Below, one piece after another: positions 13,901 to 55,110 of a stretch of 64,000 bases of DNA. The translations under genes were made by a program, and so were the position numbers. This stretch comes from Macrostomum lignano (lineage: Eukaryota): contig NIVC01000628.1 of assembly GCA_002269645.1 (NCBI GenBank), forward strand, positions 124,001 to 188,000, given 5' to 3'. Numbering within the stretch: position 1 is the stretch's first letter; every line of letters starts with the position of its first letter. Under the pieces are notes generated by a model. The model did no database searches and was not told the DNA's origin. It saw nothing but the letters and a program-made list of their open reading frames with translations.

Positions 13901-14917
13901 ATGAGCTCACCGAAGCTATGGAACGCTGTTCTCATCGTGTTCGGCCTGCTGACAGGTGTCCGGTGCGCGCAGCAGACCGCAGTATATCAGCAGGCCGATG
14001 CCCAGTGCGCACCGGAAGATTCACCGATAGTCCGAGCTCGAATCCTTGCAACGGCAACTACACCTTCGGCGACGAGTTGCGCGATTATGGCTTCGCAAAC
14101 GGCGCAGACTGGCGCTCTGGTGGCGCAGTTCCGCCGAGCCAGCCGGCAGTGCACCATATTCCAGTTTCAATCCATCTGCCAGCACCTGATGCCTGGCAAA
14201 ACCTCCGGATGCTACGTTTACTTTCGCTTTCCGATTGACCATGGGTTGCTGAACGCCAAGCTCAGCAATGTGTGGGTGGGCGACCGCGCCGGCAAGCTGG
14301 AGAACCTGGTTTGCCAGGCCCATGAGGACACCAATCGGCTCTACCCGTTCAACATCCAGTGGAGCAGCGAGGGCGCCTATTTCGACGGCACAACGGCCTA
14401 TGCGGTGCTGAACAAGTCGAGCCTGAACTTTGCCAGCGGACTCACCTGGCTGATGAAGCTAAAGAGGCAGCCTCAGGTTCAGCCGATCCTGGAATTCGCC
14501 GACTGCAACAATATAAACGGCGTCACCGGTTACGGCATTCACCTGTGGGAGAATGGCGCCCCTGGTCAGCTGTACATCAGGGCCAACCGAATCACGGGAA
14601 GCCTGCTGCCGTTTGTCTACTCAGCAACTGATGCGCTGCCGCTGGGCCAAAACGACTGGCTGAACATCGCCTTCACGGCCAATGGGAGCAACTTTGATGT
14701 CTTCGTGGCTGATTCCTTCCTGCCAAGGCACACCCTCTCTCTTTATAGCGACAACAACCCCAATCCCATAACCAACTCGAACGCCTGCCTGTACCTCGGA
14801 ATGCGAGTGGAGCCAGCCAACAATCCCAGGTTCAAAGGCACCATGAAGGCGCTGGCCTTCGCTGGGACGAGCATGTCGGAGGCGGAGATACGCGAGTTCT
14901 TCTCCATCTTTGAATGA
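13901..14917 (+). CDS. Single-exon secreted protein: signal peptide, degenerate PAN/apple-like Cys module, C-terminal LamG/concanavalin-A-like domain (338 aa)
   Basis: Hydrophobic N-terminus ending in VRC-A. Cys spacing C..SATSCAI..CTIF..C..CYVY. LamG-like motifs GAYFDGTTAYA, WLNIAFTANGSNFDVFV, LYLG and FKGTMKALAF..MSEAEIREF. Confidence 0.75.
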   Translation: MSSPKLWNAVLIVFGLLTGVRCAQQTAVYQQADAQCAPEDSPIVRARILATATTPSATSCAIMASQTAQTGALVAQFRRASRQCTIFQFQSICQHLMPGKTSGCYVYFRFPIDHGLLNAKLSNVWVGDRAGKLENLVCQAHEDTNRLYPFNIQWSSEGAYFDGTTAYAVLNKSSLNFASGLTWLMKLKRQPQVQPILEFADCNNINGVTGYGIHLWENGAPGQLYIRANRITGSLLPFVYSATDALPLGQNDWLNIAFTANGSNFDVFVADSFLPRHTLSLYSDNNPNPITNSNACLYLGMRVEPANNPRFKGTMKALAFAGTSMSEAEIREFFSIFE

Positions 14918-15337: not shown

Positions 15338-16132
15338 GAGTCTGGGACCCAGTTTACAGTGAGGTTGGCATAGCAGCTAAAACGAACAGCGAAATGATAT
15401 GAAACTGTCCCTTTTACTGCTTAAAATGGTACTCAACCGAAAAGTAAATCTCGAAATCTCGAATGAAGCTTTGTGTTGAACTCTGACTCGACTGACTTCG
15501 ATCATTTACGAACTGTGGATTCTGGGTTCAGTGCTCGGGGTGGGTTATTTGTCTGGTGAGGGTCTGCGCACTTTGTGTACATCGTTGCTCATTCTCCCTC
15601 CTCGTGCAAGCCTTATCTCTGTCACCCACCCCAATGCAATGCTGCGATGCTTGTTAAATTTATGTTCTTACCTAAGACTGACTTTAATAACCTTGTGTCA
15701 ATGCTGAGAGTTAAAGCTATTAATTTTCCCTTCGAATTTTAAATACCTTACTGCAGGGGATGAAGTATTTTACCTAATGACTCAAGAAGATAGGGATACG
15801 AGCGTACAATGTAAATTCTAGAAAAATTCATCAAAGACATGACGCAAGCCAGAATGCAGCCTAATTGTGTATTAAGGTCTCGTTTGCAATTCTGAGGTAC
15901 AGTACAAGGATGAACCAAACGTTCGTACGTTCTGGCACAAGCCGACATTGCGTGCTGACCTTCCCCAGCTGGTGCAGGAGGTGCAAAACGCTTCGTTGCG
16001 ATATTCACAGCTGGCCAGATAGAGTGCAAGTGCTGCATCTTGGACCCTCTGTTGATGGTCGGCCAGCCCGTGGCCGAACTTCAAGACCCGTGTCGCCGCT
16101 TAAAAACCGATGGTTGCTGCTTCCGTGCTGCT

Positions 16133-16919
16133 GTGTTCTGAAGGGCGTCCTGACCCTCAGTTTCTTCTGAAGGGCGTCCTGACCCTCAGTTTCTTCTGAA
16201 GGGCGTCCTGACCCTCAGTTTCTTCTGAAGGGCGTCCTGACCCTCAGTTTCTTCTGAAGGGCGTCCTGACCCTCAGTTTCTTCTGAAGGGCGTCCTGACC
16301 CTCAGTTTCTTCTGAAGGGCGTCCTGACCCTCAGTTTCTTCTGAAGGGCGTCCTGACCCTCAGTTTCTTCTGAAGGGCGTCCTGACCCTCAGTTTCTTCT
16401 GAAGGGCGTCCTGACCCTCAGTTTCTTCTGAAGGGCGTCCTGACCCTCAGTTTCTTCTGAAGGGCGTCCTGACCCTCAGTTTCTTCTGAAGGGCGTCCTG
16501 ACCCTCAGTTTCTTCTGAAGGGCGTCCTGACCCTCAGTTTCTTCTGAAGGGCGTCCTGACCCTCAGTTTCTTCTGAAGGGCGTCCTGACCCTCAGTTTCT
16601 TCTGAAGGGCATCCTGACCCTCAGTTTCTTCTGAAGGGCGTCCTGACCCTCAGTTTCTTCTGAAGGGCGTCCTGACCCTCAGTTTCTTCTGAAGGGCGTC
16701 CTGACCCTCAGTTTCTTCTGAAGGGCGTCCTGACCCTCAGTTTCTTCTGAAGGGCGTCCTGACCCTCAGTTTCTTCTGAAGGGCGTCCTGACCCTCAGTT
16801 TCTTCTGAAGGGCGTCCTGACCCTCAGTTTCTTCTGAAGGGCGTCCTGACCCTCAGTTTCTTCTGAAGGGCGTCCTGACCCTCAGTTTCTTCTGAAGGGC
16901 GTCCTGACCCTCAGTTTCT
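16133..16919. repeat. Near-perfect 29-bp minisatellite (GAAGGGCGTCCTGACCCTCAGTTTCTTCT), about 27 copies
   Basis: Contiguous units with no spacers; one variant unit near 16610. Confidence 0.97.
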
Positions 16920-18391
16920 GCAATTAGCTGGTGTTGGTCCTGTGGCGCAGGAAAACTAGATAAAAATTCATCTTCAACGGCACCCTACCCATTGAAGCTT
17001 CCATTGGACTCAAGATCGGTGCAAGAGTGTACTTTGTCTAGCCGTTACGTTGGAAGTCTTACAAACTAGATCGCCGTTAGTTGTATTCAAATCTCTTCTA
17101 AATATTACTCTGGAAAAACCTCAATGTTCAAATTCGTGTTGTTTTTCGCACTGAAAAGATTGCTGAATTTATCAGTGGTAACAAAACTCTGCCATGCCAA
17201 ATGAACATTTGCTCACTTGCAAACGCTGTGAACCGCATGAAAATGATTGTTTGAGAATTCTGTAGGAACGATGGCAAAATTAGTTTATTAGTACGTCATG
17301 TTCATCATGGCCTAACAACATACTCTTAACAACCAGCTCGCCACGGGGAGTGCTAGTCGCCAACTTTACATTTTTAACCCGCTTAAATAACCGGTTGGAA
17401 CTCATTTTTTGTATACTTCTTCCTTATCCACCCAAACTCTTGTACCCACCTCTGTGCTCTTGTACTTATTTTCAATTGCTAACAAATTAATTGGTCTTAA
17501 GCCTTTATATATTCCTTTGTTTCTTTCAAACAAGATGCTCATTGTTGGACGAAATGCACTGGCCAATGAAATGTAATAAAATAATCGAATTTAAAACAAT
17601 TGAACTAATTATATGTGCTGATTATTTCTTTCGTGTATCTACTTTTCATTAAGCGAGCTTTAATTTAGTGGGCTTTTCCACAACTTTAGATTTCTTAGGC
17701 GAAGCTCCGGTAAAATTTCATATAGATACGCCGGGGCTGAGGCCTCAGTCGCTTGAATTCTCCGCCCTCTGCCGCCGAGTTGGGCGAGTTGCCGCGAGTT
17801 GCCGCGTGGCAGGGGTTCAAGCAACCAAAACGTGAAGCTCATTTTCATTCCTATCACAGGCGAAAACGTTAAAATACGCAGGCGAAAGCAGATTAGTTGG
17901 GCTTGGCCGTTTTCTTTTGGTTGAGTTAGAGGTTAGTCTTTGAGTCCTTTCGCCGCTCTTTCTCGCGCACTTGGCTTCTCACCCACCGGCCCGGCCACGT
18001 GCTGCGCTCGTCAAACTTCTCAGACTGACTAACCTCGTCTGTCAACCGCATCGCCTTCGCTCGCCGCCTCACCTTTGCCTTCTACTCGTATCTGCTGGCT
18101 GTTACAGTTTTGACACGTTTGCATGGTTGCTTTCCACTGTTGGCTTCCATTATTCCATTCATTCGCCAAAGGTAGAAGGCTGTGAAAACTGAGCTTTGAA
18201 AGCAGTGTTCGTTGATTCAGCTGGCAAATAACTGTCAACTGTGTAGAGATAAGATATTCTAATCTATGCATTAGACTGAAAAAGCGACAGAGTAAGGGTG
18301 ATAAATATCTAAATAGCGATTAATTTATTTTTGCAAGTTAACTGGCCCTCGCCAGTTTGAAGACAACTGACAGCCTTTTTCATCTTCTGCG

Positions 18392-21300
18392 ATGGAAGCT
18401 CATTCTGCAACGGAGTCTGCAACAGCTGCTCAGCAGGAGCAAAAACCGGTGAGCAAATGCAGGAAGTGCAGCAGCCACCTTTTCAAATCAAGCGAAGCAA
18501 ATTTTGAATTTTTGAGAAGAGACATTTGTAACCTTTTGAATTAGGGAAAAATTGAGCTTACAAAAAATCTCTCGAATTATGCAAATCAAAGCAGACGTCA
18601 ACTTTATATGCTCTGAATTAAACCGACTGCAGTCGATAATGTGTAGAACGAGTCGACTAGAATGTGATAAAGTTCCTACCTTGGGCTTCTAGGGGGATAA
18701 TATTGGGATTTACGTCTTCAATGGGTCGAAAAACTGACGTCGATCAACTGTTGTTCCGCGTTTCTAGGCAACTGCTCCGACAAGTTGCCGATTGCAGACA
18801 GTCTGGTTCCTGGTTGCCCCACTGTTTGGGTAGCGTAAAATATACATACGTTGAAGCGTATATTTTTGCCAATTGTACTTTTTGATGGGATGCAATACGA
18901 ACGCGAAAATCATGCCAGAAGAGTGGAAAAAAGGGGAACTACCTACTATGCACTCGCTGCCAACCAAATAATTATCAATCTGCTCGTACAATAACGCTAG
19001 GCTTAACTAGATGTTTTTTGTTTTAAATAGTCAATGCAACGACAAAAGAACAGAATGCGAGGGCATGAGTATTTCTAGGAAAGCAAAATCATAGAGAAGT
19101 TTAAATTGGCACCATTTTTATGAGTGTACAAAGACTAGTAGGTAAAGTAGAGTCTACAAGTCTTTAGATTATTTCCTCCCCTTCTTCTTTCCGAAAAAAA
19201 GAACACAATGGCTCTCTCGACGATACTTCGCTTGGCCTTTCAACTACCACTTTACTAAAGGACATTGTGATGGTCGAAAATTGATATTAACTACAAGAAT
19301 TTATGTTTTCAGGTTTGTAGTGATATTTTAAAGTACGAGCGTAAAGAAACAAAGCACCGATCTTCTATGATACAGAAACTTCTCAGAGCTTTTGATATTG
19401 GTTCGTTTTCTTACCGTAAAAAACGTAATTACGGGTTGCGAACTCCAGAAAAGCTACCTGGACGAGCTGCCGTACTACTCCAACTACCAACTGGCCGATG
19501 ACGAGGTGCCCCTGGCCAAGTACCTGCTTCCCGCCGACTCTGCCGAAGTGCAGCGAGGTGTCGAGTCCGGCCGCTTCCCGACGCTCTCCGGCTTGGCGCG
19601 GCTGCAGCGGCAGCGAGGCCAGCCGCCCAATCCGTTGGGCGACGCGGCGAACGAGTCGCCGCCGGCTCCGTTTCCACCGCGACGCACCAAAACGGAGCTG
19701 CTCGAATCGAAGGACTTTACAGAGACGGACAAGTTCGCCGAGTCGGTGACGCCGTTGCCAAGCGACGACTGGGAGCAGCTGGCGGAGCGGCTGTTCGAGC
19801 AGAGCCGCAGCAACCTGGAGAAGGTGAGGGTCGCGTTCTGCTTCGCCTGCGCGCACCGGCAGCTGGCAGAGGTTGCTGAAGAAACTCCGGCATACAAAGC
19901 TATCCGGGAAAATGAGGCGACGGATGTATTTGAGAAGCTGCTTGGGTAAGTTCCATTTTCTGGTCGATGTTTTGGTCTTTTGAATCTTTACATAGAAACT
20001 TTTGACGTGAATATTTTAGTAGTAGAAAAGCAAAAAATGTTATTCTGTATAAGACCACTTGACTTACTTGACTTAGCTGCAGGGCTGTCCCGGAGGGGAC
20101 ACAGCGGGAAGGCGCGGGTGCCCATTCCGCTAGTCCCTGAACGGCCGACGCGTCGCTATGGACGGAGGGTTGGCGCCGCCCAGGGAGGTCTCCCAGTGTC
20201 GCCAGCAGCTATAATGCTCTCTGGAAAGGAGAGATAAGACCATAAGACCAGGTTACAAGTAGATTGTCGAATGAGTTCATCATATCCTCATAGGTGACCC
20301 TTAGACCCATAGACAAATAGGAAGCCCTCTAAGAGCGTAGTACAGAGGCAAACCCAAAGGAATCCTCACAGTCGACGTTTCAAAATCAATGTTCCATGCT
20401 GTACGCTCATTATTCAACGCTTCGGAATCATTATTTAAGGCTACTAAAATGCTTTCATGGTACAATGGTTAGTGGTGTATATGGTTTTGAGGTAGACAAT
20501 GATTCGTTTTTCACGAGTGGCTACGCGCACTCGTCACATTGGCCATTAATTTAAATTCTCGCTTCATAATAGCTGTACGAGTATTGATTGAATTGTCTAT
20601 AGTCGAAACAGGACTTTCAGTTAATGACCAGCCATTAAGCAAAGGTCATTACCGTGAAGTGACATTTCGATCAATAAAGTTTATTCAGCGAATATTAACC
20701 AAGACTATCTGATGATAAAAACATTAGTCAGTGTCTTTTACATTGACTTTAGCATTTCGATTCGTTTCCAAGGATTCGAAACTAATTTTTTCAGCTGTGG
20801 AAAAGTGCCAAACAAGAAGCTTTACGGCTACAAAAAGGGTGCGGACTCCGACTCTGGCGTAAAGGCCGAACTCGGTGGCTGTTGGTTCGCGTGCTACGTT
20901 GAGGGCGAATGGCGATTCGTTGACCCGCACTGGGGTGCTACGGCTGTGATGAACCACGATTCCGGCAGATATGGCTCCATTGACGATAAGGGCCGAGTCA
21001 GCAGTGCCAGAGAACAGAAGGGACAGAGCGTATTTTACCGTGATGAGTTTCACTTCCTGACTGATCCAGAAAGGCTGATCACAAACCATTGTCCACAACA
21101 GCATGATCTGGAGTGGCAGCTGCTAGCGAGGCCACTCAGTATTGAAGAATTTGAACTTTTTCCTCGCTACTTTGGAGGTTCTGCCATAGAAATGGAATTC
21201 TACGATCTGGAGCCGATAAACTATCCTTATAACGTCATCGTAGCAAAGCCGGGACCCGTTGAGATTCTGTTGAAGGAGCGATCGGGAGAACAGTATAGGT

Positions 21301-24300
21301 ACAGCGGGCAGCTAAAGATACACAAGAAGCACATCAACAGTGAATCAAAGACAGCCATTTTGAGTGCCCATCAGGAGAAGGCCTGCATCAGCAAGGGGAT
21401 CCGTGTGTCAAAGGATACCGTCAAGTTCATCTTTGAGCCACCATATCCAGGACAATACGCTCTGGAAATCATTCTCTGGCGTCAGGTCAGTGAGGTTACG
21501 CTAACTGGATGTAAGTTCCTTACGTATACGATCCACTGCCCTCAAAACTGGGAATCGGTCGATGTCATCCCGGAGGGCCAGGAAAATCTTCGCGAGTTCG
21601 GACCAGGACAAGACCTTCAACGAGCTGGACTAACCTCAGAAGCGCCCGGAGAGCTGAAGGCTGCCGACGGAGAGGCATCGCTGGAAATTGCACCGCTTGA
21701 TGAGGACGAAAAACCTAGTAGTGACCATCTGAGGTGAGAGACTATGAGAGCCACATTCTATACTGAGAAATCAGAAAACAAACAGTTAGGGCATGGCTAC
21801 TATTCAATACGATTCCCTGCAGACAACAAATCACCACAGCAAACAGACAATAATCAGTTAGAATCTTCATACGCTCGTAAAAACATCATTTTCTGTGGCA
21901 TAAGACCAGCAAGACATCATTCAAATATTGATTTTGTGGTTATACTAACCAACAGAAAAAAATGAATCAATAACCAGCCAATTAAAAAATCTGATTCCGA
22001 CAATATTTACATTGCAGAAGTCTGACGTGCCAAGCGCTGGGTCCGGACAACAAGCCCCTGCCGACGGGCAGCGTGCTCGTGTGGCGCGACGATCGCCGCA
22101 ACGCCTTCCTGTTCCTGGCGCCCGATTCCGGCTACTACGCTCTGGTGCTCTACGAGAACGGTCGGCCCGTCGGCCAGTTCCTGGTGGACGCCAGCAGCGA
22201 AGCCAAGGACGGCGCGAGCTTCCCGCTGCCCGACTGGAGCCGTGTCGGAGGTCTCGGACTCGCCGCTGTAAACAAGGCGGACGGCGGAGGCTGTCGGCTG
22301 GTGCCACTGAGCCACCAAACGCCGTACGTTCGAACCGAAGAGTTCGAGTTGGCGATGCGCTTCGGTGTTGATGGCGCAGGCGAAGAAGGCGACGCAGGTA
22401 TCGAATTGAAGTCGGAGATGCTGGGTGTCGGAGCGGACGGAGGGACCGAGTCGGTCGGCGACTACTCGTTAGTGAGCGGCGTCGAGGGCGGCGGCTTCGA
22501 GGTGCGGTGCCGGTTCCCGAGAGCGGGCCACTACCTGCTCCGCCTGTCGTTCCGAGAGAGCGGCGGAGACTGGCGCCCGTACTTCACGTACTTCGTGCGA
22601 GCTGTGGGCCAGCTGGACGGATCGGCATCCGCGTTTCCGAGCCTCGGTGCGGACTGGCCGGTCGGCGGAGCGCTCATCGAGCCGCTGGACCGCACGCTGT
22701 CCGTTGGACAGCCGACGCCGATATGCCTCCGTCTCGTGGATTCCGCAGCTATCGGCGCTGTGGAGGTGGTCGACGAGCGAAGCGGCAGTCGGGAGCCGTT
22801 GAGTCGCGACCCGCAGGACCCGCGGTTGTGGTTCGGGTCCGTGACGGCATCTGCGGGTAACACCGATGGAGCGAACGCTGCCGGGAGCGGCGGCGTGACG
22901 GTGGTGGCCCGTGTCAACGACGGCGTTGAGACACAGCTTGTAAAGTTCGACGTCGAGTCGGGAAGCAGCGCGGAGGCCAAGGCGGCGGCACTGCGCGAAG
23001 CTCGGGAGCTAAACGAGCGACGTCGGGTGGCCGAGGAGAATCGGCAGCGGAAGCGGGAGAACCGGCGCCGCCACGAAGAGGGACTGGAGCCGCTGCCTAC
23101 CCAGGTGCATTTTTTAATCCTACTTGCACATGTATCTCAGATTTTTGCGATTGATTAGTAAATAATGGCACCGATTGATCGCTTATTTCACAAGTTACGC
23201 TTTTACTTTTATCTTTATGTAGGATTCGCTTAAGAAATTGGCTGAAGCAGAAGCTGCTGCAAAAGCGGCGGCAGAGGCAGAAGCCGCAGCCAAAGCCAAT
23301 GCGGCGTCCAACAAGACGTTTGAAAGGGTGGAAGTGGCTTCAAAAAAATCGACTGACTCGAAGGCAGCTTCCAATGAAGCTGTGAAAGCGGCATCCAGGG
23401 CGGAATCTGCCGGTCAGGCGGTGACAACGGCGGGTGCCGCAGTAGAGGCGGCTGTTCAGTCAGCGGCCGAAGCTGCCAGGACTGCGGCTGAAGCTGCGAA
23501 GTCAGGTGAAGTTAAAAAAGCTGCCAAGGCGGCGAAATTAGCGGAGACAGCCGCTCTTGAAGCGAAATCTGCCGCTCAGGCTGCAGTGAGTGCCGCGACC
23601 GATGCGCGTACGGCCGCCAAAGCGTCTGCCGAGGCGGAACAAAAAGCCAAGACGGCGGCCGAGGCGGCGAGAAACGAAGCGGACCAAGCAGCAGTGGAAG
23701 CTGAGAAATCAGGAAATGACCAAACCAAAAAGGCCGCTCAAAATGCCGCAACACTGGTCGATGAGGCGGAAGCTAAATTGAAGACGTCAAAGGAGGCTTC
23801 AGAAAAGGCTGCCGCGGAAGCTGACGCCGCAAGTAAGAAGGCCGCGAAGGCCTCCTCAGATTCTGAGGCTGCAAGCAAATCGTTAGCTGAAGCGAATGCG
23901 GCAGCGACAACAGCTGCTGAAGCAGCAGCAGCGGCAAAGGCAGCCGAGGCAGAAGCTGCGGCGGCAGCGAAGGAAGAGGTCAAACTTCTCATTTCTCAGC
24001 TAGACGAGGCGCTGCTTAGTAGAAAAGTTGTTCAGTTGCGCAAGGCGATCAAGGCTTTGGAACCGCACGAGTTTGGATTGCACCGCTATCACGAAAGGAA
24101 ACTGCGGGAAGCTCGGCTGACACTGACTGCGCTGCAGAATAGGAAGGGTGCGTGAGGAACGACGAGGTTGTACAGTCCGATTTCAATGAGGAGTTCATAG
24201 TTTTGTGGTTTACATCCAGGTCAACATTCAGTTGAAATTCTCAATGAAGTCATACGAAAGCCTGATACAGGTATAGAGGATTAGAGACAAACCAGATTGG

Positions 24301-26062
24301 AACCTGATGATTTTGAATTCAGCTTTTGTTTATCTGATGCATCATTCTTGAGTTACCCGACCAGCTCACCTCCCACCCCTGCAGACATACGGGACGCCAT
24401 GGCGGACGCTCAGCGAGCCCGCAGCACCGACCGCCTGCGCGCGTTGGTGCACCGTCTGGAGGCTGAAGCCGAGTCGCAGCCGCTGACGGAGGCGCAGCTG
24501 GCGCTGTTCAGCGAGGACCTGCGGCTCGCCAGAGAGGCCATCCAGCGAGATGACAAGCTGAAGCGAATTCCCTCACACCGGCTGGAGATGAGTCCGAAGA
24601 GTCTGTCCGAGCTGAGGCAGTACAGCCGGCCAGTGGAAACGGTGCACCGAACGGTGCAGGCGCTGCTGCTGCTGCTCGGGTACTACGAAAAGCGCACACG
24701 GGTGAGCGATCCGCGCTTCATCATTTGCCGCTTCTATGGATTCATTCTGAGTCTGGGACAAACTATTGAAATGCCTTCATGTAAATAAGTACTTTCCTGA
24801 TTTAATCAACCACATTAGGGTGTCGAAAGGAAGTTTACAAGGTGTTTAGCAATTGCTTAACAATGTCCCTTTGGCGCAAATTTGAATTCCATTTAGTTTA
24901 ATGAACGTTTCTTGATTATTTATTAATTATATGGCCCTCTAAAACAGTGATCGAATTACACTACTGCAAGTAGTGGATATTGGTGGAGTGGATTATCATA
25001 CATTTTTTCTCCACCTGACAGAAATGGCCTCGCTGCCAACCGCTGTTGAAGAGCATCAACAAGTCTGTCGCGGACTTTCAGCCACGCTTCGTTGATCCGC
25101 GCATCGCTGCCCGAAGTTCGGAGATTCTGAGCAGTATCGACAAGCGCGAGATCGCCCTGCAGAGCGCTGCCGCCTTCGCTTTCTATGAATGGGTTCGTTC
25201 GAGTTCGAATAAGCAACGTTTTTGAAATTTCGTTCGTAAGCGGAATCGAAAATACGATCTTATCGCCCGAATATACGGGTACTTGGGCCTTGACCGCACA
25301 GCGTTCATGTGACAGTCGTTTCCTACAAATGAATTAAGCCGAAAATCATGATCTCACATGTTATCTTTACGTTAGACACCATGCATTAGCTACACCCATA
25401 TCATGCATCCCAAGGTTGGGAGTTTTGGCCTGATCTGACTAATCACGCACAAGTCGCAGACTCACCATCCGGAAGTTATTAGCGAAAATCGTAATTTCGA
25501 TTCCGTGGTTAATTGAGTAAATTATTTACAGGTCTTGCTTCATTGGGCCGATAAATAAGAAATTCTAGCTCTGAGTTTACTACATATTGGCCTATTAGTG
25601 TGTGAATTTTTGCTTAAATCTGAATTGAATTGAAGGGTCTCTAAAAATGTTTGAATGCGCTGGGGTAGAACCTAGAAACCCTGGGGCTACAGGGAACATA
25701 CTTGGATGGGATCTTCCCTGTGTGCCTGGTCGAACTGCTCTGACAGGATTTCGATAGCAGTCGGCAATTCGGGCTGCATTTTGTCGCTTACAGTAAGTTG
25801 ACATCCCACTTGGCTTCCGGTTCCGACTTCTCCGACTGAACCCCCTGTCTCAAAGAGTTTTGACTTTAATTTTCTAATATTCGAATCCTTGCAGGCAGTC
25901 AAAACAGCGAACTCGATCAAGGAGGCGTCAACACCGGAGACCTTCGTTCCGGCCAGCATGAAGCAGCAGATACTAATCCTTGGCGTCACCGAAGAAGAGG
26001 ACGCCACGTGGGACTTCGACGACGAAGGCATCCGCAGGAGGTCGTCCGTGGTGCCTAAGTAG
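18392..26062 (+). CDS. Hillarin/KY-like transglutaminase-fold protein, paralog A; exons 18392..18448, 19449..19945, 20795..21733, 22018..23104, 23223..24147, 24385..24701, 25022..25192, 25895..26062 (1386 aa)
   Basis: The eight exons join in phase (4161 nt). Motifs LEKVRVAF, GYKKG, WFACYVEGEWRFVDPHWG, EFHFLTDPE and WQLLARP are present, followed by beta-sandwich-like repeats, an Ala-rich helix, and a hillarin-like C-terminus (LSELRQYSRP..VQALLLLLG, AAAFAFYEW). Exon 1 is less certain. Confidence 0.8.
20513..20534 (+). repeat. Short dispersed hairpin element ACGAGTG-GCTACGCG-CACTCGT
   Basis: Perfect 7-bp stem with the same core as the copies at 15310 and 26769. Confidence 0.6.
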
Positions 26063-26768
26063 ACTCCAGTCTATCTAAAGACGACGAAAGGCCCCCCCAG
26101 AAAAACGACTGTGATTTTCCTAGACGCAGCACAATAGTTATCCAAGGACCGCTGGTAGCTAGTAAGAGGACGTGACACACAATCCTGGCTTTCTAAGATT
26201 TAAGGATCTTATAATGATTTTAATATTCATCAAGCTCATTAAAGAGGCAAGAAGGGTTTACATTTTCTTTCTTGTGACCAGTAATTGTTCTTATTATTTA
26301 TATTGAAACATGTATCTTTATATACGAGTAGGTTCTTCTTTTTGTGAGCTAAAGTGCCACATGTACTTTTAATATATTTTTTTTCCACTTGACCGAAGAG
26401 AAGTATATACGAACTAAGTAATAATTGCCTAGATTATATCATTGCAAAGAACTTTTACCCAGACAAAATGACAAGTCAAAACGGCCATTATTACACTATT
26501 CAGCAGCAGATTTTTCAAACTGATAAGAGCAGGCATACTGCTATGATTTTATTAAGCTAATTAAAAGTTTATGACTAGCGAATTCAACTGGCCCTCGCCA
26601 CGCGTAATCAATGTACACCATACTCTCTGTCTAAGTGACCAATCAGTTCACCCACCCCATCTCTCGTTCAATTTAAGTGTAAAAAACGACGTTCTAACTC
26701 GTCCTTGTGTTCTGTCTGCTGGATAAAAGTTCTTTATAATGTGCTTGTATAGTATGCTGCATCGTTGA

Positions 26769-26819
26769 ATAATGGCCAGAAACACACGTGCTACGCGCAC
26801 TCGTGTTTTTCGCCATTAT
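26769..26819 (+). repeat. Longer copy of the same hairpin element (ATAATGGC...GCCATTAT)
   Basis: 8-bp terminal stem plus an imperfect inner stem around CTACGCG. Confidence 0.6.
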
Positions 26820-27617
26820 AAAACTCCGCAACATACTATACAATCTACCGTGCTGTTCGATTCTTTTATAACAGATCGCGTTCCTAGATTTTTAAGAGAG
26901 TTGATTTCACATCTAGCTACTTAAACAAAAGTGAAAAGTCGCCACCCTTTGCCCCAGTGAGCAGTGTCTTTCGACCAGCGTCTATCACCTGGCCAACCAT
27001 TTTGATAGTAAAAAAAGCTTGAAAAAACAATGAAAACCGGGCGGAAGCTTCAAATCCATCCGATCTTTGCCTCCACGAGTCCACTCCTCCCAATCCCTCC
27101 TCACCCAGCCCAACTCTGCGTCCCGTGGCGCAAGTTGCGTCACTCAAAAATCAATATAACTGTGCTCGAATTTACTGCGCATTCTCAAATGGTGACGACT
27201 TTTTAATTTTGTTGAGTATAGATGTGCCTGCTCCATTGCCAACCTTCTCCTCTTATTTATGATTCAATTATTACCAAGTTTTTCGATAGAATTCTCGCAT
27301 TAATTTGTGACGGAAGTCAACAAGCGGTCTTAATAAACTTTTGCCTGATTTCACCTAAAGAGATATGGTGTGAGATTCTTCTTTTCTGAAGTTCTCTTCA
27401 AGGCAAAATTACTAAATTAGATTCAAAATTTGATGAGCTGGGCAAGAGATAAGAACTCTTCAAAAGCTGATACAGTATCTGAGAAACACTCTGTGATAGC
27501 ACAGCGGGATCGGTTAAACACTTCTTGAGAATATTTAAGCATTGGCAACTTGAGCGAGCAGAGAAAATCCAGGCAAGAGAAAAGGCTTCAGTGATTAGAC
27601 AGTATCCGCTCCCGACC

Positions 27618-30600
27618 ATGGAAACTGCTGAGTCTGGCATGGTAAGTACTGGCACACTTAAATTTCAATTAGCATTGAGTCGTGTTTACAATCCGATTGT
27701 TGGTTTCTTTTCATTCAAATAATAATTCATTCATTGAACTTGAATGCATTCTTCGCTCGTTCCAAAACAAGATTTTGCCTCAAATTTTTTGTAAGTACCG
27801 GGTACGACTCTCAGACCCACCAGCTCGTCTTTGACTCCTCTTCTCCTTCATATTCATCCTCCATCCAACCCCCATGATACCTATCATGTCGTCTCCAAAC
27901 CTATCATATCGTCTCCATACCCTCTCGTCTCCATCTAGTCTCCATACCCTCCATCTAGTCTCCATACCCTCCATCTAGTCTCCATACCCTCCATTTAGTC
28001 TCCATACCCTCCATCTAGTCTCCATACCCTCCATCTAGTCTCCATACCCTTCATCTAGTCTCCATACCCTCCATCTAGTCTCCATACCCTCCATCTAGTC
28101 TCCATACCCTTCATCTAGTCTCCATACCCTTCATCTAGTCTCCATACCCTCCATTTAGTCTCCATACCCTCCATCTAGTCTCCATACCCTCCATCTAGTC
28201 TCCATACCCTCCATCTAGTCTCCATACCCTCCATCTAGTCTCCATACCCTCCATCTAGTCTCCATACCCTTCATCTAGTCTCCATACCCTCCATCTAGTC
28301 TCCATACCCTTCATCTAGTCTCCATACCATCCATATAGTCTTCAAACCCCTGAGTAGTCCCTGAGTTGGTCCTATAATATTTGGTTAGCAGACCTGTAAT
28401 TGAGCGCAAGGTTGCTTGCTGCTTTCAGTTAAGATGCGCTGAACAGAAATTTACAATTTAGAAATTTAGCAGTTTTGTCTGAGACAGTGAGAGAATGCTT
28501 TTTGTATCAATTGACTTAGGCGAGCTACCTGGACGACCTGCCGTACTACTCCAACTACCAACTGGCCGATGATGAGGTGCCCCTGACCAAGTACCTGCTT
28601 CCCGCCGACTCTGCCGAAGTGCAGCGAGGCGTCGAGTCCGGCCGCTTCCCGACGCTCTCCGGCTTGGCGCGGCTGCAGCGGCAGCGAGGCCAGCCGCCCA
28701 ATCCGTTGGGCGACGCGGCGAACGAGTCGCCGCCGGCTCCGTTTCCACCGCGACGCACCAAAACGGAGCTGCTCGAATCGAAGGACTTTACAGAGACGGA
28801 CAAGTTCGCCGAGTCGGTGACGCCGTTGCCAAGCGACGACTGGGAGCAGCTGGCGGAGCGGCTGTTCGAGCAGAGCCGCAGCAACCTGGAGAAGGTGAGG
28901 GTCGCGTTCTGCTTCGCCTGCACGCACCGGCAGCTGGCAGAGGCTGCTGAAGAGAAGCAACCGTATGAAAATATTCGACTTGGAAACTGCAGCGAAGTTT
29001 TTGCCGCGCTACTTATGTAAGATTGCCAAGCCATACTAGAAATCGTTCACTCGCACCAATGTTTCAGGTTCCAGAATAAATAAAAATGCAATATTTGACG
29101 CGCTTTCAGCAATTATCTACGAGTGTGTCACTAAATTTGGTAACCCACAGTAAGACAGGCCTGCATGACATTCGAGTTGTGCATGCCAACTATTGTTAAG
29201 TGGGCTGAGGACCCAACTGCAAGGCCATGAATGATACACGTATTTCACCAACTCTCTTTGATCATACATGCGCACAATCGGCACAATCAGCACTGAGCCT
29301 CAGTGCGGCCTTGCCAAGCCTCCAAATTTCATCAGCGCGTCGACCGCATGTGCCTGCATCAGCTGTGACTTCGTTGGTCACTGGCCTTCACCGAGGCGAA
29401 GCTTCTGAACATTCAACAGGTGACACCAGGTAACTATGGACACCCTGTTGCAACAACAACAACAAAGTACTTCACCCGCCAGCCACACAGTGGCTAGAAA
29501 GAGGGGAAAAGTCAGAGAGCGCGTCTCTGGGCCATAGCCCTCAGAAAGTCACAACCCCCAGCTTGGTCCAGGGCGCCAGCATCGGTCAAAAGCCTATCAG
29601 GGTATCTCGCCGTTCGCCCTTGGCCTCGCCTGCGCGGTCCCTGCAGCTTGAGCAGCAGCACCTCGTGCAGCGGCTCAGGGCAGCGAGCCTCCGACCGGAT
29701 GACGTGGCCAGCCAGTCGAAGTCGCCGCAGGTCAGAAGGCCGCATCATGCCCTTGTGTAGAGGCGTGCCCTCGTGTAGAAAGCGGCGTTGGTCTCGCTGC
29801 CGGAACCGCTGCGCACTCCGAAAGCCGCACGCAGCATGGCCGCATGCGCAGCGTCCAGCTGCCTCTCCTAAGCGTCCGTCAGGGTCCAGATCTCGGTGTT
29901 GTACAACAAGACAGTCTCAACGACTGCCTGAAACAGCCGAGCTTTGAGCCCGTCATCCAGGGCCTCAGAATGGAGCGCGGAGCGCACAGAACGAAACGCG
30001 GCACAGGCCAGGCCTTGTCTTCTCACCAGGTTGTCGGCAACGTCCGGCACGAGGCCGCCGAGGTACAGGAACCGCTGGCAACGGGTAAGCATGATTGCCT
30101 CCCGGGCAGCGTCTCGGTAATTGATCTCGACAGGCAGGTTGGAGGACACCGTGAAGACTACCGTCTTCCGTGCGTTCAGCATGAGGCCGACTCGCGATGC
30201 TGCTGCCGTCAGGCCATCCAGCAGCCGCTGAGCGCCTTCAGCCGACGATGACAGCAGCGCGAGGTCGTCCGCGCAGCCGAGAATGGAGAGCCGCTTCTCA
30301 GGGTGCCACCGACTCATGCGTCTTCGCAGCAGGAAGCCGTTGGGTAGGCCGGTCCTCAGTACCCAATCCAGACCAAGCACAAACAGGAAAGGCGCCAGAG
30401 TGTCACCCTGCAGCACGCCTGACGACGTGCTAAATTGGTCCGACAGTCCATCTGGCGTCATCACAGAAGCGGTCGTATCCTGGTACATCAACATGATGGC
30501 GGAAATCAGTTGGTCCGGTTGCAGATTTCTCTATTTTCGCTGATCAAGCCTCAGTGGGCGAACCTCAACTGCTCGACATCCTCAGCTAGTCTCTCAAGCA

Positions 30601-33600
30601 TTCCGTCATCATCCCGATGCCGTCGACACCTTCAACAGATAGCACCAGATGACTTTGCATTTTTCTTCTTCTCTAGATACGAGCTACATTTCTGAAACAT
30701 AAAATTATTTTTACCAGTACCTGTTGAAGGACAGAAGCTCTGCCTGGGTGAAGGCCAGTGACCAAAGAAGTCAGGGCTGATGCAAACACGTGTAGTCGAT
30801 GCGCTGATGAAATTTTGATGCTTGGCAAGGTTGCACTGAGGTGGAGTGCTGCTTGGTGCACAGGGGTGTACTGAATGCACTAGGGAAACTTGGGAATACT
30901 CGGGGAAAGATTCGACCTTCTGGCAGAATCGTTGAATATCTCGACAGTCCAAAAAGCTTGTTTAGCCCGTTTTTCTGAATTTCGTGTGCCTGCGTTGCTC
31001 CGTTCTGGCGCAGCAAAAAAGTTGTCAAGGGGGGGGGGGGTAATTACACCTTGATAGGTCGACGGGCGGAAAAATGGCTTCGGATTCCTACCGTTAAATA
31101 GTCTATGCAAAAAATCCTCTAATAAATTGGGCACTCCTATCCTGTGTACTATTTAACTTGAATAATTTGAAACATTTGCTGATATTATGCGGGAATTATT
31201 GTTAATTATTGCTTGAATCTTTAAGATCACTTTGAAAATGGCTTGAAAATCTCACCTGACCCTATCGGACACAATTTAGCATAGCCGGTGTGCCGATGCA
31301 AGTAATTACCGGCTACAAGAAGGGCATCGGCTATGAGTCTGGGCTCAGGGCACCACTTGGCGGCGTCTGGTTTGCCTGCTACGTCGAGGGCGAATGGCGA
31401 TTCGTAGATCCGCACTGGTCCGCGCAATCCGTCAGCGGTTTCGAGGCAGGCAACTACAGACAGGTGGATGAGCGCGGCCTTGTGAATGATGTAACAGAAG
31501 TCGGCGGCACCACAGTCTACGATCTCAACGAGTTCTGGTTCCTGACTGACCCGCACCAGTTCGTTGTCAGTCACTTCCCCAGCGAAGACCAGCTCGAGTG
31601 GCAGCTGCTGGCCAGGCCGTTGCAATTTGAAGAGTTCGAAGAAATGATCGACTACTTTGACGGCACGGAAACGGAGATGAACGTCTACCAGCTAGAAACA
31701 GTCAGTCATCCAAAAAACGTCATCATTTCAAAGCCCGGATCCGTAGAAATCCTGCTCCGAGAACTTACTAATGAGCAGTACATGTACGAAATGCTGCTGA
31801 AAATACACAAGAAGCACATTGCTGACGGATCGAACTTGGCGCATTTGACTGCCTACCAACAGAAGGCCTGCGTCAGCATAGAGACTGCAGCATTATTTCT
31901 TACTTTTGAAATACAGGCGTAGCTACTGAACTATTACCAATTGCAGAAATTTGACGTGCCAAGCGCTGGGTCCGGACAACAAGCCCCTGCCGACGGGCAG
32001 CGTGCTTGTGTGGCGCGACGATCGCCGCAACGCCTTCCTGTTCCTGGCGCCCGATTCCGGCTACTACGCTCTGGTGCTCTACGAGAACAGTCGGCCCGTC
32101 GGCCAGTTCCTGGTGGATGCCAGCAGCGAAGCCAAGGACGGCGCGAGCTTCCCGCTGCCCGACTGGAGCCGTGTCGGAGGTCTCGGACTCGCCGCTGTAA
32201 ACAAGGCGGACGGCGGAGGCTGTCGGCTGGTGCCACTGAGCCACCAAACGCCGTACGTTCGAACCGAAGAGTTCGAGTTGGCGATGCGCTTCGGTGTTGA
32301 TGGCGCAGGCGAAGAAGGCGACGCAGGCATCGAATTGAAGTCGGAGATGCTGGGTGTCGGAGCAGACGGAGGGACTGAGTCGGTCGGCGACTACTCGTTA
32401 GTGAGCGGTGTCGATGGCGGCGGCTTCGAGGTGCGGTGCCGGTTCCCAAGAGCGGGCCACTACCTGCTCCGCCTGTCGTTCCGAGAGAGCGGCGGAGACT
32501 GGCGCCCGTACTTCACGTACTTCGTGCGAGCGGTGGGCCAGCTGGACGGATCGGCATCCGCGTTTCCGAGCCTCGGAGCGGACTGGCCGGTCGGCGGAGC
32601 GCTCATCGAGCCGCTGGACCGCACGCTATCCGTTGGACAGCCGACGCCGATCCGCCTCCGTCTCGAGGACGCCACAGCTATCGGCGCTGTGGAGGTGGTC
32701 GATGAGCGAAGCGGCAGTCGGGAGCCGTTGAGTCGCGACCCGCAGGACCCGCGGTTGTGGTTCGGGTCCGTGACGCCATCTGCGGGTAACACCGATGGAG
32801 CGAACACTGCGGGGAGCGGCGGCGTGACGGTGGTGGCCCGTGTCAACGACGGCGTTGAGACACAGCTTGTAAAGTTCGACGTTGAGTCGGAGAGCAGCGC
32901 AGAGGCCAAGGCGGCGGCACTGCGCGAAGCTCGGGAGCTTAACGAGCGACGTCGGGTGGCCGAGGAGAATCGGCAGCGGAAACAGGAGAACCGACACCGC
33001 CGCGATAAGGGACTGGAGTCGCTGCCTGTTTGGGTACTTAATAAAGTTGTTCTGCCATCGGTTTTATCTCGAAATGCATTTGTTCGAAATATTTTTGGTA
33101 TTTTTTATCCTTTTCCTGACAGAGTCACGCTGAGGTGAGAGCTGCTGCCGATTTGGCTGCAAAAAGGCTGGCCTTGGCGTACGAGAAAGAAGAAAAAAGA
33201 GCAAAAGCTTTTGCGAAATCAGCTGCGGCAGAAAGAGCTCAAGCTCAGAGCCTAGCAGCAGCAAAAGCAGCGGCTGAAGCCAAAGCGGCTTTGAAAGCGG
33301 CAGCAATGGAGGCATCAAAGTTGGCGGCTTTAGCACTCGCGGTGTCGAGGGCGGTGGCCGAGTCCCAATCGGCAGTATTGGCGGCTGCTGATGAGGAACT
33401 GGAAACAAAGACCGCGGCTGATGCGAAGGATATCTCGGCGGCATCGTATCGATCGGAAATGACTGAGAAGGCGGCTGTCAAAGCCAAATTAGCGGCTGAG
33501 TCAGCGAACGACGTGGCAGCCGAATTGCAGGCGCTTGCAGCTGCAGCAGCAGAAGAAAAAGTGACTGCCAGTTCGGCAGCTGATGCGGCTTCAAAAGCGG

Positions 33601-35395
33601 CTGAGGCTGCAGCCTTCGATGCGGAGATCGCCGGTTCTCCGCTACCCGACGAGGCTGCAAAGTTTGCATCATCAGCGTCGCACGAGGCCGAAGCTGCTGC
33701 CAGGGCAGTCACCGAGATCGCTGCAAAGTCAGCCACCGAGGCTTCCATCGCGAAGAGGGGAGCCCGCATGGCGGCTGCTTCGGCGGAGACGGCAGCAAAG
33801 TCAGCTGCGGTTGCGGCTGCTGCAGCGCAGGAGGCCACAGAAGCGATTGCGGCGGAAAAAGCTGAGCTGAATTACCTGATTGCTGAGCTGGACGTGGCCT
33901 TGTTGGACCGAAAGTTAACTCGGGTGCGCAAGGCCGTTGAGTCGTTGGAGGCTCGCGAAAAGGAGCTGCGCGGCAGTCAGTCGAGTAAGCTGAAGGAGGC
34001 ACAACAGACTTTAACGGCGCTACAGAATAGAAAAGGTTCTGTTTTTCTGTTGACAAAACAAGTGGCAGTTGTGCTTAAATTCTGATGTATTACTGAAGGT
34101 AGCTTGTATTGTAAAACCGTCACATTAATTTGGCCAGTGACAATTTCGATCCCGTGCTCTATCCAACCTCCGCAGACCTTCGGGACGCCATGGCGGACGC
34201 TCAGCGAGCCCGCAGCACCGACCGCCTGCGCGCGTTGGTGCACCGTCTGGAGGCTGAAGCTGAGTCGCAACCGCTGACGGAGGCGCAGCTGGCGCTGTTC
34301 AGCGAGGACCTGCGGCTCGCCAGAGAGGCCATCCAGCGAGATGACAAGCTGAAGCGAATTCCCTCACACCGGCTGGAGATGAGTCCGAAGAGTCTGTCCG
34401 AGCTGAGACAGTACAGCCGGCCAGTGGAAACGGTGCACCGAACGGTGCAGGCGCTGCTGCTGCTGCTCGGGTACTACGAAAAGCGCACACGGGTGAGTCA
34501 AGGACTACCCAAGTAGAAGGGCGGGAAACTACATTTTCGGGGAACTTTTGAGAGGCTGGTTTTATTGAAGAAATACATACCGGAGAATGGAGGTTTTCAT
34601 TTTTTCAGCGTAAAATTTGTAATGATCCATTTGATGGCGGACAGACCCAATGTTCATCTTTTAAAACGACTTGATTTTCTGTTAGTTCTATAGATATTCG
34701 TAGAGCTTTTTTGTTCAGAAAGTTTGTATTTTGTGTTAATTTTATGAGCGCAATCCTAATTGCATGACCTGTGTCCAAACATCGTAAAAATGACACAACT
34801 TAATTCATTCGCAATTTCGCATTGAGGGCGGAGAAGCTTTTTAAATGCTAGGTCGGTGTGTAGTGTACAGAGTGCAGAGCTTGTGTTCTATAGATTGTAC
34901 TGTGCAGTCATTTTGCTGCCCCTCACTGGGTCTGTTTACTCGTGAACTTCTCCACGTTACCAACAGAAGTGGCATCGCTGCCAGCCGCTGTTGAAGAGCA
35001 TCAACAAGTTTGTCGCAGACTTTCAGCCGCGCTTCGTTGATCCGCGCATCGCCGCTCGAAGTTCGGAGATTCTGGGCAGCATCGACAAGCGCGAGATCGC
35101 CCTGCAGAGCGCTGCCGCCTTCGCCTTCTACCAATGGGTTCGTTTGAGGAATTTTTCTTGACAATGAGAGTGCAGCATGGGAGCCTGACTCCTTCATCAA
35201 TCAATTTTACTCCAGGCGGTCAGGACCACGCAGTCCATCAAGGATGCAGCCTCAGTGGACAGTTTTGTTCCAGCCAGCATGGTTCAGCAAAGGTGGATCC
35301 TTCGGGTCACGATGGAGGAGGACTCTGCGTTGGACTTTCAAGACAAGGGCATTCGCAAGAAGAGTGCACGTCGTCCTCGGACTTCAAAAATTTGA
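27618..35395 (+). CDS. Hillarin/KY-like paralog B; exons 27618..27641, 28520..29016, 31280..31918(?), 31947..33033, 33123..34035, 34176..34492, 34967..35137, 35216..35395; possibly disrupted at 31920
   Basis: Exon order and phases match paralog A, and exons 2, 4, 6 and 7 have identical lengths (497, 1087, 317, 171 nt). Exon 3 runs into TAG at 31920-31922 unless a 28-nt intron is removed. Confidence 0.72.
27930..28330. repeat. 20-bp minisatellite (TCCATACCCTCCATCTAGTC)
   Basis: About 20 copies in paralog B intron 1. Confidence 0.96.
29288..29421 (+). repeat. Left arm of an approximately 135-bp imperfect inverted repeat
   Basis: Aligns to the reverse complement of 30719..30851 at roughly 80-85% by eye. 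Confidence 0.85.
29448..30520 (-). mobile_element. 5'-truncated, inactive RTE-clade non-LTR retrotransposon fragment (RT and thumb regions, 3' (TTG)n tail)
   Basis: Motifs GVLQGDTLAPFLF, CADD in place of YADD, FLYLG, ETVLLY..EIWTLT and RRLRLAGH. It has an in-frame TAG at 29868-29870, a later frameshift, and a (CAA)n tail at about 29453-29465. Confidence 0.9.
30719..30851 (-). repeat. Right arm of the approximately 135-bp imperfect inverted repeat
   Basis: Pairs with 29288..29421. Confidence 0.85.

Positions 35396-42972: not shown

Positions 42973-43063
<91 letters not shown>

Positions 43064-46845: not shown

Positions 46846-55110
<8,265 letters not shown>

Follow-up and report, generated by a model that had tools for sequence, protein, structure and literature searches.

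In the copepod Tigriopus californicus, gene conversion between GOT1 paralogs is confined to exons whose neighbouring introns cannot be aligned, and the converting genes retain diverged islands (PMC3728101). The model of Teshima and Innan, as it is cited in that paper, belongs to the same background. The mammalian gene pairs BMP8A/B, DDX19A/B and TUBG1/2 have undergone long-lasting partial concerted evolution, in which a higher GC3 was read as support for biased conversion, and most known conversion cases lie within 55 kb (PMC2720389). In duplicated fungal ribosomal protein genes, homogenisation is limited to the coding sequence and has been ascribed to cDNA donors (PMC6993855). A literature search on gene conversion in the flatworm Macrostomum lignano returned nothing on the locus described here, where two paralogs, A and B, alternate between nearly identical and strongly diverged coding blocks.

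The window, a 64,000-nucleotide stretch whose identity as part of M. lignano Mlig_3_7 contig NIVC01000628.1 was confirmed, carries gene A (PAA79557.1, BOX15_Mlig000318g3) at positions 18392–26062 on the plus strand. Exact spliced mapping of its 1386-aa product (P0001) resolves eight exons (18392–18448, 19449–19945, 20795–21733, 22018–23104, 23223–24147, 24385–24701, 25022–25192 and 25895–26062), in agreement with the coordinates that the original prediction, made from the DNA letters, had assigned to exons 2, 4, 6 and 7. The product is a KY-like/transglutaminase-like protein. The Ig-like_KY family (PF23265) matches P0001 with 28.5 bits, above the Pfam gathering cut-off of 27, and all proteins recovered in a protein search came from M. 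lignano apart from a single distant one from a leech, the nearest relative outside M. lignano in that search being a Helobdella KY-like protein. This domain, the source names and the Helobdella relative together constitute the likeness to KY (kyphoscoliosis peptidase)-like transglutaminase-domain proteins. The label of a transglutaminase-like domain comes from source names only, and Pfam lists no transglutaminase family for P0001 at E up to 1. Unlike in KY-like proteins, the sequence encoded by exons 4–8 of gene A matches no Pfam family or solved structure; it comprises additional sequence of Ig-like appearance, a region rich in alanine and a C-terminal module. We had taken exons 6 and 7 to resemble a dynein stalk or microtubule-binding region, a reading that was dropped as nothing relevant was found in Pfam (E up to 1) or in a sequence search of solved structures.

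Paralog B is unannotated and lies on the same strand, about 9–10 kb downstream of A. Its exons 2–8 were located by tblastn and translations at 28520–35395 on the plus strand (28520–29016, 31280–31877, 31947–33033, 33123–34035, 34176–34492, 34967–35137 and 35216–35395), whereas exon 1 of B was not found by these means. Corresponding exons of the two genes are offset by 9071–9945 nt, which fits the distance range of most known conversion cases. In the window, exon 3 of B is truncated by a 448-bp deletion (junction at 31877/31878, plus strand; alignment with L003 22170–22617) that takes the last 325 nt of the exon along with its donor site and a further 123 nt of intron 3, and the earlier comparison of exon 3 between the paralogs had to be corrected for this loss. 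An intact B on another contig matches UniProt A0A1I8H883 and A0A1I8JCF9. The B-like protein model P0002 had no contig placement by exact look-up, and the locus was reached via A-like members of the cluster. Intron 2 of B also harbours a reverse-transcriptase fragment.

Comparison of A with B by BLASTN revealed four shared blocks, all on the plus strand. Block 1 covers exon 2 except for its first 3 nt and last 63 nt (A 19452–19882, B 28523–28953; 98.6% identity over 431 nt, no gaps), block 2 corresponds to exon 4 (A 22011–23098, B 31940–33027; 96.6% over 1088 nt, gapless), block 3 to exon 6 (A 24371–24706, B 34162–34497; 97.6%), and block 4, the weakest of the four, to exon 7 (A 25018–25203, B 34963–35148; 92.5%). 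The longest perfect runs measure 291 nt in exon 2, 209 nt in exon 4 and 137 nt in exon 6, lengths that do not arise by chance at a background divergence of 40%. By comparison, exon 3 gave only two weak BLASTN matches (76% and 66%) and the introns gave none; a further search for residual intron homology by global and local alignment yielded only a 13-nt T-rich patch.

Synonymous divergence, calculated per exon by the Nei–Gojobori method and in a sliding window, alternates between blocks of low and of saturated divergence and is not uniform per exon. The pS between A and B is 0.00–0.14 in the exon 2 core, exon 4 and exon 6 and about 0.2 in exon 7, as compared with 0.54–0.98 in the exon 2 tail and exons 3, 5 and 8; the corresponding dS is 0.07–0.10 in exon 4, 0.01–0.05 in exon 6 and 0.12–0.29 in exon 7. 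Among the paralog-specific exons, exon 3 (20795–21733 in A, plus strand), which encodes the transglutaminase-like core and the first Ig-like_KY domain, differs at 39–41% of nucleotides with a saturated pS of 0.77 and an amino-acid identity of 53%. It escaped conversion despite strongly conserved protein motifs. Exon 5 (23223–24147, plus strand), encoding the alanine-rich region, differs at 47% of nucleotides with dS >2, and exon 8 (25895–26062, plus strand), encoding the C-terminal tail, at 33–35% with dS 1.3–1.4. These values bear out the earlier reading that exons 3, 5 and 8 and the introns are strongly diverged, that exon 3 carries synonymous changes even in conserved motifs, and that exon 6 is nearly identical over its 317 nt. 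The near-identity claimed for exons 2, 4 and 7 holds with qualifications: the diverged tail of exon 2 measures 63 rather than about 70 nt, 17 paralog-specific sites remain in the final third of exon 4, with 12 of these falling in the terminal 52 nt, and exon 7 is a shared block but only 92.4% identical (13 of 171 nt differ).

The edges of the blocks are defined by paralog-fixed sites in the window copies, A_W and B_W, and in independently assembled copies on L002/L003, A_2 and B_2. Exon 2 has no such site between exon positions 19 and 434, while its tail (19883–19945 in A, plus strand) has 32 paralog-fixed differences in 63 nt; block 1 thus ends inside the exon, 63 nt before the donor, and the copies on both contigs agree on this position to the base. 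Exon 4 is likewise free of fixed sites at positions 1–727, and its fixed sites cluster in the last 52 nt. Altogether, the shared blocks hold 23 consistent paralog-fixed differences in both contigs' copies, of which 14 are no more than 55 nt away from an exon edge. The predicted collapse of identity at the splice sites was observed: converted exons share 4–9 and unconverted exons 4–7 of the 20 intron bases beside their junctions, which is the chance level. A few intron bases match by eye, but given these counts, an extension of A–B identity into the introns was rejected as proof of a genomic donor. In contrast, the idea that splice sites as such bound conversion was not supported, as one edge lies inside exon 2 and the 3' end of exon 4 is only partly homogenised. 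Conversion is therefore more aptly described as limited to blocks of persisting similarity than as exon-restricted; in A and B the two descriptions coincide, because the introns can no longer be aligned and the blocks of similarity are, as it happens, exons.

A third copy, X (in L004), differs from A with a dS of 0.05–0.07 in exons 2–6, and introns 2, 3, 5, 6 and 7 of the two copies are 15–21% different with many indels. By comparison, intron 4 is identical at 118 of 118 positions and is contained in a perfect run of ~800 nt that extends from the end of exon 4 through the entire intron into the first part of exon 5. Intron 4 was co-converted with the adjoining exon sequence, and this run therefore requires a genomic DNA donor; the co-converted intron belongs to the X–A pair, whereas the flanks of the A–B blocks fit a genomic or a cDNA donor alike. 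X and A are a younger pair than A and B, and the three copies show successive stages of escape from conversion, with introns escaping first and whole exons later.

As judged from the sequences, A and B are old tandem duplicates in which recurrent gene conversion, templated by genomic DNA, very likely maintains the near-identity of four coding blocks. The pair is taken to be old because synonymous sites are saturated wherever they are free to diverge. A break in one copy would be mended from the other, and repair would succeed only where a few hundred bases remain ~90–95% or more identical. The unalignable introns and exons 3, 5 and 8 would fail to pair, and conversion tracts would end within the similar blocks, such that block cores would stay homogenised while edges would erode slowly. 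Selection for different function may have let the exon 2 tail together with exon 3, and exon 5, escape. A farther-reading interpretation, in which the mosaic is itself a selected arrangement with exons 2, 4 and 6–7 kept shared by conversion and the exon 2 tail with exon 3, and exon 5, held apart by selection, is improbable; if true, it would mean two enzymes on one continually re-synchronised scaffold. In a bolder variant of the same idea, the sharp A–B edges could stem from repair by spliced RNA or cDNA in germline stem cells.

The original prediction had also raised RNA-templated conversion. A reverse-transcribed, spliced mRNA as donor would copy only exon sequence, with identity stopping at splice sites, and A–B identity indeed falls to chance within a few bases of 7 of the 8 shared-exon edges. 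In addition, dS in the shared exons is far below intron divergence, the criterion applied to fungal ribosomal protein genes (PMC6993855), and the fragment in intron 2 of B indicates that reverse transcriptases exist in the M. lignano genome. However, sharp edges and a dS below intron divergence are unspecific, since unalignable introns yield both with a genomic donor as well. The edge inside exon 2 and the partial homogenisation of exon 4 indicate that divergence, not splicing, sets the limits, and exons 3, 5 and 8, which belong to the same mRNA, were not homogenised. Furthermore, no intron loss was found in any copy: A, B and X retain all seven introns, even the one that separates the neighbouring shared exons 6 and 7, and the perfect X–A tract contains the whole of intron 4. 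A cDNA donor is thus unlikely, and RNA templating is not needed.

The mosaic is replicated outside the window. A_2 and B_2 differ by 5.2% in exon 4 and by 38.7% in exon 3, and P0002 and P0009, protein models of a different source, show the same alternation. Because it recurs on independently assembled contigs, the pattern is very improbable as an artefact in which near-identical exons were collapsed or cross-polished in a polyploid, repeat-rich assembly. Chimeric scaffolds and redundant haplovariants are reported as many in Mlig_3_7 (PMC10733133), and L002 and L003 are redundant, with differences that are mostly gaps typical of long-read errors; but the 23 paralog-fixed differences persist within the shared blocks on both contigs, and polishing is unable to turn 40%-diverged sequences identical.

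Variation between these contigs further supports continued exchange. Among 1989 shared-block sites, 15 vary both between A_W and A_2 and between B_W and B_2, as against 1.9 expected (p = 1e-10). At 10 of these 15, the variants group by contig (A_W = B_W, A_2 = B_2) in a test of paralog grouping that spans contigs of one assembly rather than species, while a more complex history has to be assumed for the four crossed sites (A_W = B_2, A_2 = B_W). The dS between A_W and A_2 is 0.103 in exon 4 versus 0.045 and 0.044 in exons 3 and 5, and that between B_W and B_2 is 0.048 versus 0.024 and 0.017. Such raised between-contig divergence in the shared blocks is expected if conversion imports variants, and is the opposite of what nucleotide-level constraint would produce. 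These data show that exchange between A and B continued after the contigs' versions of the locus had diverged. Consistent with the original prediction of recurrent conversion and of shared modules alternating with paralog-specific ones, block-wise dS, variants shared on one contig and raised divergence between contigs all point the same way. An absence of exchange, with exons 2, 4, 6 and 7 under very strong nucleotide constraint (imposed by RNA structure, codon usage or some overlapping element), agrees with the GC3-richness of these exons, as expected of strongly codon-biased sequence, but is very improbable: synonymous divergence of the same gene between contigs is higher, not lower, than in exons 3 and 5, A and B on one contig share variants, and constraint cannot keep dS at 0.01–0.1 while neighbouring exons saturate. 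A recent duplication with extremely fast divergence of exons 3, 5 and 8 and the introns is scarcely credible, as it accounts for the low dS of the shared exons and nothing else, whereas introns and exons 3 and 5 have diverged at an ordinary rate, with only 0.5–5% difference between the versions of the locus on the two sets of contigs, the introns of A and B have no alignable sequence at all, and synonymous sites in the conserved motifs of exon 3 are saturated.

The shared blocks are also compositionally distinct, as had been noticed in the comparison with exon 3. Within this one gene family, GC3 in the shared blocks as compared with elsewhere is 0.795 versus 0.544 in A (Fisher p = 4e-23) and 0.785 versus 0.584 in B (p = 2e-14), and GC drops from 0.66 in the exon 2 core to 0.43–0.49 in its tail. 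In the non-converting paralog C, which provides an outgroup, the exon 2 homolog has a GC3 of 0.49, as compared with 0.79 for A and B, with similar values in exon 3; the unconverted exon 8 of A, however, is also high in GC3 (0.77). Young singletons in the shared blocks comprise 66 strong-to-weak and 17 weak-to-strong changes, which fits a GC content kept above mutational equilibrium. The suggestion that conversion is GC-biased is consistent with the GC3 of 0.79 versus 0.54–0.58 and with the contrast to paralog C, though these do not amount to proof. Conversion between A and B is probably GC-biased, and such repair would account for the high GC3 of the converting blocks. We know of no examination of GC-biased repair in Platyhelminthes.

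Comparison with the described systems places the A/B locus among clear but ordinary cases of gene conversion, as a new example of a known process with no new mechanism. Like GOT1 of Tigriopus (PMC3728101), it has diverged islands inside homogenised genes and one copy that is degenerating while still exchanging. The contrast is more extreme in A and B, where dS of 0.01–0.1 and saturation alternate over seven exons, escape extends to entire large exons (939 and 925 nt), and several independently assembled locus copies within one polyploid genome repeat the pattern. As in the mammalian pairs (PMC2720389), concerted evolution of two nearby duplicates involves only some of their exons, the others having diverged, and GC3 is higher in the concerted part; however, in those mammalian pairs the intervening introns are homogenised too, as compared with none in A and B, and a co-converted intron is seen only in the younger X–A pair. 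With the fungal ribosomal protein genes (PMC6993855), the locus shares coding sequence that is nearly identical at synonymous sites beside diverged introns and flanks. In those very highly expressed genes the whole coding sequence is homogenised, as compared with only some exons in A and B, where an edge within an exon and the co-converted X–A intron make a cDNA donor unnecessary.

The A/B locus thus provides a clean, internally replicated instance of mosaic concerted evolution in a flatworm, for which the homeologous copies in Mlig_3_7 serve as natural replicates, and its GC3 contrast hints at GC-biased repair. For work on this gene family, the exon-level identity of A and B will create ambiguity in orthology trees, in the mapping of reads and the expression counts drawn from them, and in targeting by RNAi or CRISPR.

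Searching with the provisional translation of gene A returned only Macrostomum lignano proteins and one distant leech protein. The top match, PAA79557.1 (BOX15_Mlig000318g3, 1386 aa), is encoded on NIVC01000628.1 of assembly GCA_002269645.1 (Mlig_3_7), and window 8392-36062 matches its locus at 100% identity. Exact spliced mapping of PAA79557.1 places the plus-strand exons of A, with the numbering of the original prediction, at 18392-18448 (exon 1), 19449-19945 (exon 2), 20795-21733 (exon 3), 22018-23104 (exon 4), 23223-24147 (exon 5), 24385-24701 (exon 6), 25022-25192 (exon 7) and 25895-26062 (exon 8). The A protein is labelled a transglutaminase-like domain protein in source records, and its sole curated domain match is Pfam Ig-like_KY. 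For the module encoded by shared exons 6-7 (24385-25192), a suspected resemblance to a dynein stalk or microtubule-binding region found no support in Pfam or in a sequence search against solved structures.

The tandem paralog B lies downstream of A on the same strand, with exon 2 at 28520-29016, exon 3 at 31280-31877, exon 4 at 31947-33033, exon 5 at 33123-34035, exon 6 at 34176-34492, exon 7 at 34967-35137 and exon 8 at 35216-35395. The window copy carries a clean 448-bp deletion (junction 31877-31878; compare 22170-22617 of L003, a contig with a second version of the locus), which takes the final 325 nt of exon 3 together with its donor site and 123 nt of intron 3. Reading through the junction leads to a stop codon; exon 3 skipping would preserve the frame. 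The B version on L003 is intact, whereas window B carries the deletion and no annotation in the record. The 2.3-kb intron 2 of B houses a minus-strand reverse-transcriptase fragment (29868-30494; Pfam RVT_1, E = 9.5e-9) that looks like a retroelement remnant. A much more distant paralog, C (~40010-44991; 38-42% amino-acid identity to A), contains homologs of exons 2, 3 and 8 but lacks counterparts of exons 4, 6 and 7. Its intron contains a 16-nt minisatellite (40526-41700), and one reading frame stays open through a 72-nt repeat (43892-44755). Minisatellites with 8-72 nt units crowd the whole window (e.g., also 15991-17044 and 53731-54742). Some are wholly uniform; the 29-nt array spanning 15991-17044, for which 27 registers are listed, is 100% identical across its core (16136-16899).

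BLASTN between A and B reveals four ungapped, strongly similar plus-strand segments and almost nothing more: A 19452-19882 with B 28523-28953 (98.6%), A 22011-23098 with B 31940-33027 (96.6%), A 24371-24706 with B 34162-34497 (97.6%) and A 25018-25203 with B 34963-35148 (92.5%). Exon 3 yields two weak matches (76% and 66%), and the introns give zero BLASTN matches. Base by base, identity begins and ends within a few bases of the exon 2 acceptor and of the acceptors and donors of exons 4, 6 and 7; in exon 2 it ends 63 nt ahead of the donor. Synonymous divergence alternates accordingly, with dS of 0.13-0.24 in exon 2 as a whole, 0.07-0.10 in exon 4, 0.013-0.05 in exon 6 and 0.12-0.29 in exon 7, as against a saturated pS of 0.77 in exon 3 and dS above 2 in exon 5 and 1.3-1.4 in exon 8. 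A 40-codon sliding window reproduces the blocks rather than a uniform dS, and the diverged block containing exon 3 starts inside exon 2. Perfect runs of 291, 209 and 137 nt are beyond chance at a background divergence of 40%. The predicted exon mosaic is confirmed, and the pattern is real and highly non-random. Four details needed adjustment: exon 7 is similar but only 92.4% identical, exon 4 is near-identical overall but retains paralog-specific sites in its 3' third, the diverged tail of exon 2 measures 63 nt rather than ~70 nt, and exon 3 is indeed diverged but its end is gone from window B.

The original prediction allowed that the shared exons were homogenised from an RNA template. Their dS lies far below intron divergence, a criterion applied to fungal ribosomal protein genes (PMC6993855), though this pattern is not specific. 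The intron flanks of A and B do not discriminate a genomic from an RNA donor (4-9 of 20 nt match beside shared exons, 4-7 of 20 beside diverged ones); comparison of A with X, an extra A-like copy, does. X (PAA56120.1, 815 aa; 10001-17100 of contig NIVC01002661.1, here L004) lies upstream of the A copy of that locus version; a deletion of 32 nt shifts the frame in its exon 4. The dS of X from A is 0.05-0.07 in exons 2-6 and ~0.21 in exons 7-8, and divergence is 15-21% in the alignable parts of introns 2, 3, 5, 6 and 7, which carry many indels; the pair displays the same exon-favouring homogenisation as A and B at an earlier stage. Intron 4, by comparison, is identical at 118/118 positions, which has a chance of ~0.83^118 (~3e-10) if intron 4 diverged as the other introns did; it lies in a perfect run of ~800 nt that begins late in exon 4 and finishes within exon 5 (A ~23032-23830; L004 ~13330-14120, the latter estimated). 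High identity also reaches 60-100 nt into several further introns. This ~800-nt identity links X and window A on different contigs, and the locus versions differ by 2-5% elsewhere. Because spliced RNA cannot provide intron sequence, conversion in the A/B/X family uses genomic DNA. In addition, one A-B block edge falls inside exon 2, all seven introns are kept in every copy, and exons 3, 5 and 8 are unhomogenised despite sharing an mRNA with exons 2, 4, 6 and 7. An RNA template is therefore unsupported, and for A-B it is unnecessary and unlikely.

That the mosaic is an assembly artefact is contradicted by further copies of the locus. The A protein cluster contains three further annotated proteins, encoded elsewhere in this assembly on contigs L002, L003 and L004. 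Over 19 kb, L002 and L003 share 99.7% identity (12 mismatches, 33 gap openings), a pattern suggestive of redundant haplotigs in which long-read errors persist. Frame-breaking gaps interrupt B exons 4 and 6 on L002, where the sole gene model over B (28009-29060; at least 172 aa) takes an ATG inside exon 6 as its start, probably because indel errors upstream truncated the annotation. The upstream neighbour of L003 differs from that of L002, and one of the two contigs may be chimeric. Both hold a second version of the entire tandem, which aligns collinearly to the window, introns included, at 93-98% identity; L004 holds a third version of the locus, with X. Three versions fit the three homeologous subgenomes (~2% SNP divergence) reported for Mlig_3_7 (PMC10733133). 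The second version repeats the mosaic: the difference between its A and B copies (A_2, B_2) is 5.2% for exon 4, 1.9% for exon 6 and 4.7% for exon 7, compared with 38.7% for exon 3, 47% for exon 5 and 33% for exon 8. The UniProt models A0A1I8H883 and A0A1I8JCF9, which have no NCBI accession in the cluster table, likewise join a B-type exon 3 to shared exon 4. Moreover, A and B retain 23 differences within the shared blocks that are the same in both locus versions, indicating real copies that were assembled separately.

Recurrent gene conversion between A and B is supported by block-wise dS, coincident variants and between-version divergence. Across 1989 aligned shared-block sites, the window copy of A (A_W) differs from A_2 at 69 and that of B (B_W) from B_2 at 55. 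The variable sites coincide at 15 positions, where 1.9 are expected (p = 1e-10); A and B of one contig share the same base at 10 of these 15, and the crossed pattern occurs at four. Six of the ten same-contig sites fall in a 185-nt part of exon 4 (22243-22427), the clustering expected from one short conversion tract. In shared exon 4, dS between versions reaches 0.103 for A (0.045 in exon 3, 0.044 in exon 5) and 0.048 for B (0.024 and 0.017), as expected where conversion brings in variants of the paralog; nucleotide-level constraint holding the shared exons alike predicts the reverse. The unequal depth of the blocks (exon 6 < exon 4 < exon 7) requires more than one conversion event. Given saturation across the remainder of the gene and introns that no longer align, the blocks could have stayed convertible only if they never diverged far, and it is from this that we infer recurrence.

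Paralog-fixed differences concentrate at block edges: positions 1-3 and 18 of exon 2, 12 sites in the last 52 nt of exon 4, position 3 of exon 6, and positions 3, 8, 165 and 166 of exon 7. None occurs in the first 727 nt of exon 4 or at exon 2 positions 19-434. The edge within exon 2 falls at the identical base in both locus versions, so that splice sites are not supported as literal limits of the tracts. DNA-DNA recombination would need similar sequence on either side of a tract; block cores would then be converted often, edges seldom, and sequence past a diverged stretch never. The observed edges, including that inside exon 2, are what such a requirement predicts, and the similar stretches happen to be exons because the introns have nothing in common.

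The predicted GC enrichment of the homogenised blocks is borne out by GC3, which is 0.795 in shared blocks and 0.544 elsewhere in A (Fisher p = 4e-23) and 0.785 and 0.584 in B (p = 2e-14). Within exon 2, GC content is 0.66 in the shared part and 0.43-0.49 in the diverged tail. The exon-2 homolog of the non-converting paralog C has a GC3 of 0.49 compared with 0.79 in A and B, and its exon-3 homolog 0.61 compared with 0.56-0.67. Young single-copy variants in shared blocks comprise 66 strong-to-weak and 17 weak-to-strong changes, as expected of sequence kept above its mutational GC equilibrium. GC-biased conversion, reported with raised GC3 for mammalian gene pairs (PMC2720389), is plausible here as a correlation within one gene family, with A exon 8 (GC3 0.77) as a contrary case.

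The A-B pair belongs with described conversion systems, and its mechanism is textbook. As in the copepod GOT1 paralogs, conversion is confined to exons beside unalignable intron sequence, with islands of divergence inside converting genes (PMC3728101); as in BMP8A/B, DDX19A/B and TUBG1/2, concerted evolution is partial and GC3 is raised (PMC2720389). Among the papers searched, none deals with gene conversion here. What distinguishes it is the size of the contrast, an alternation that runs across seven exons, and the internal replication and successive stages offered by X-A, A-B and the three locus versions. In practice, the shared exons will confound reads, probes and trees for the A/B family.
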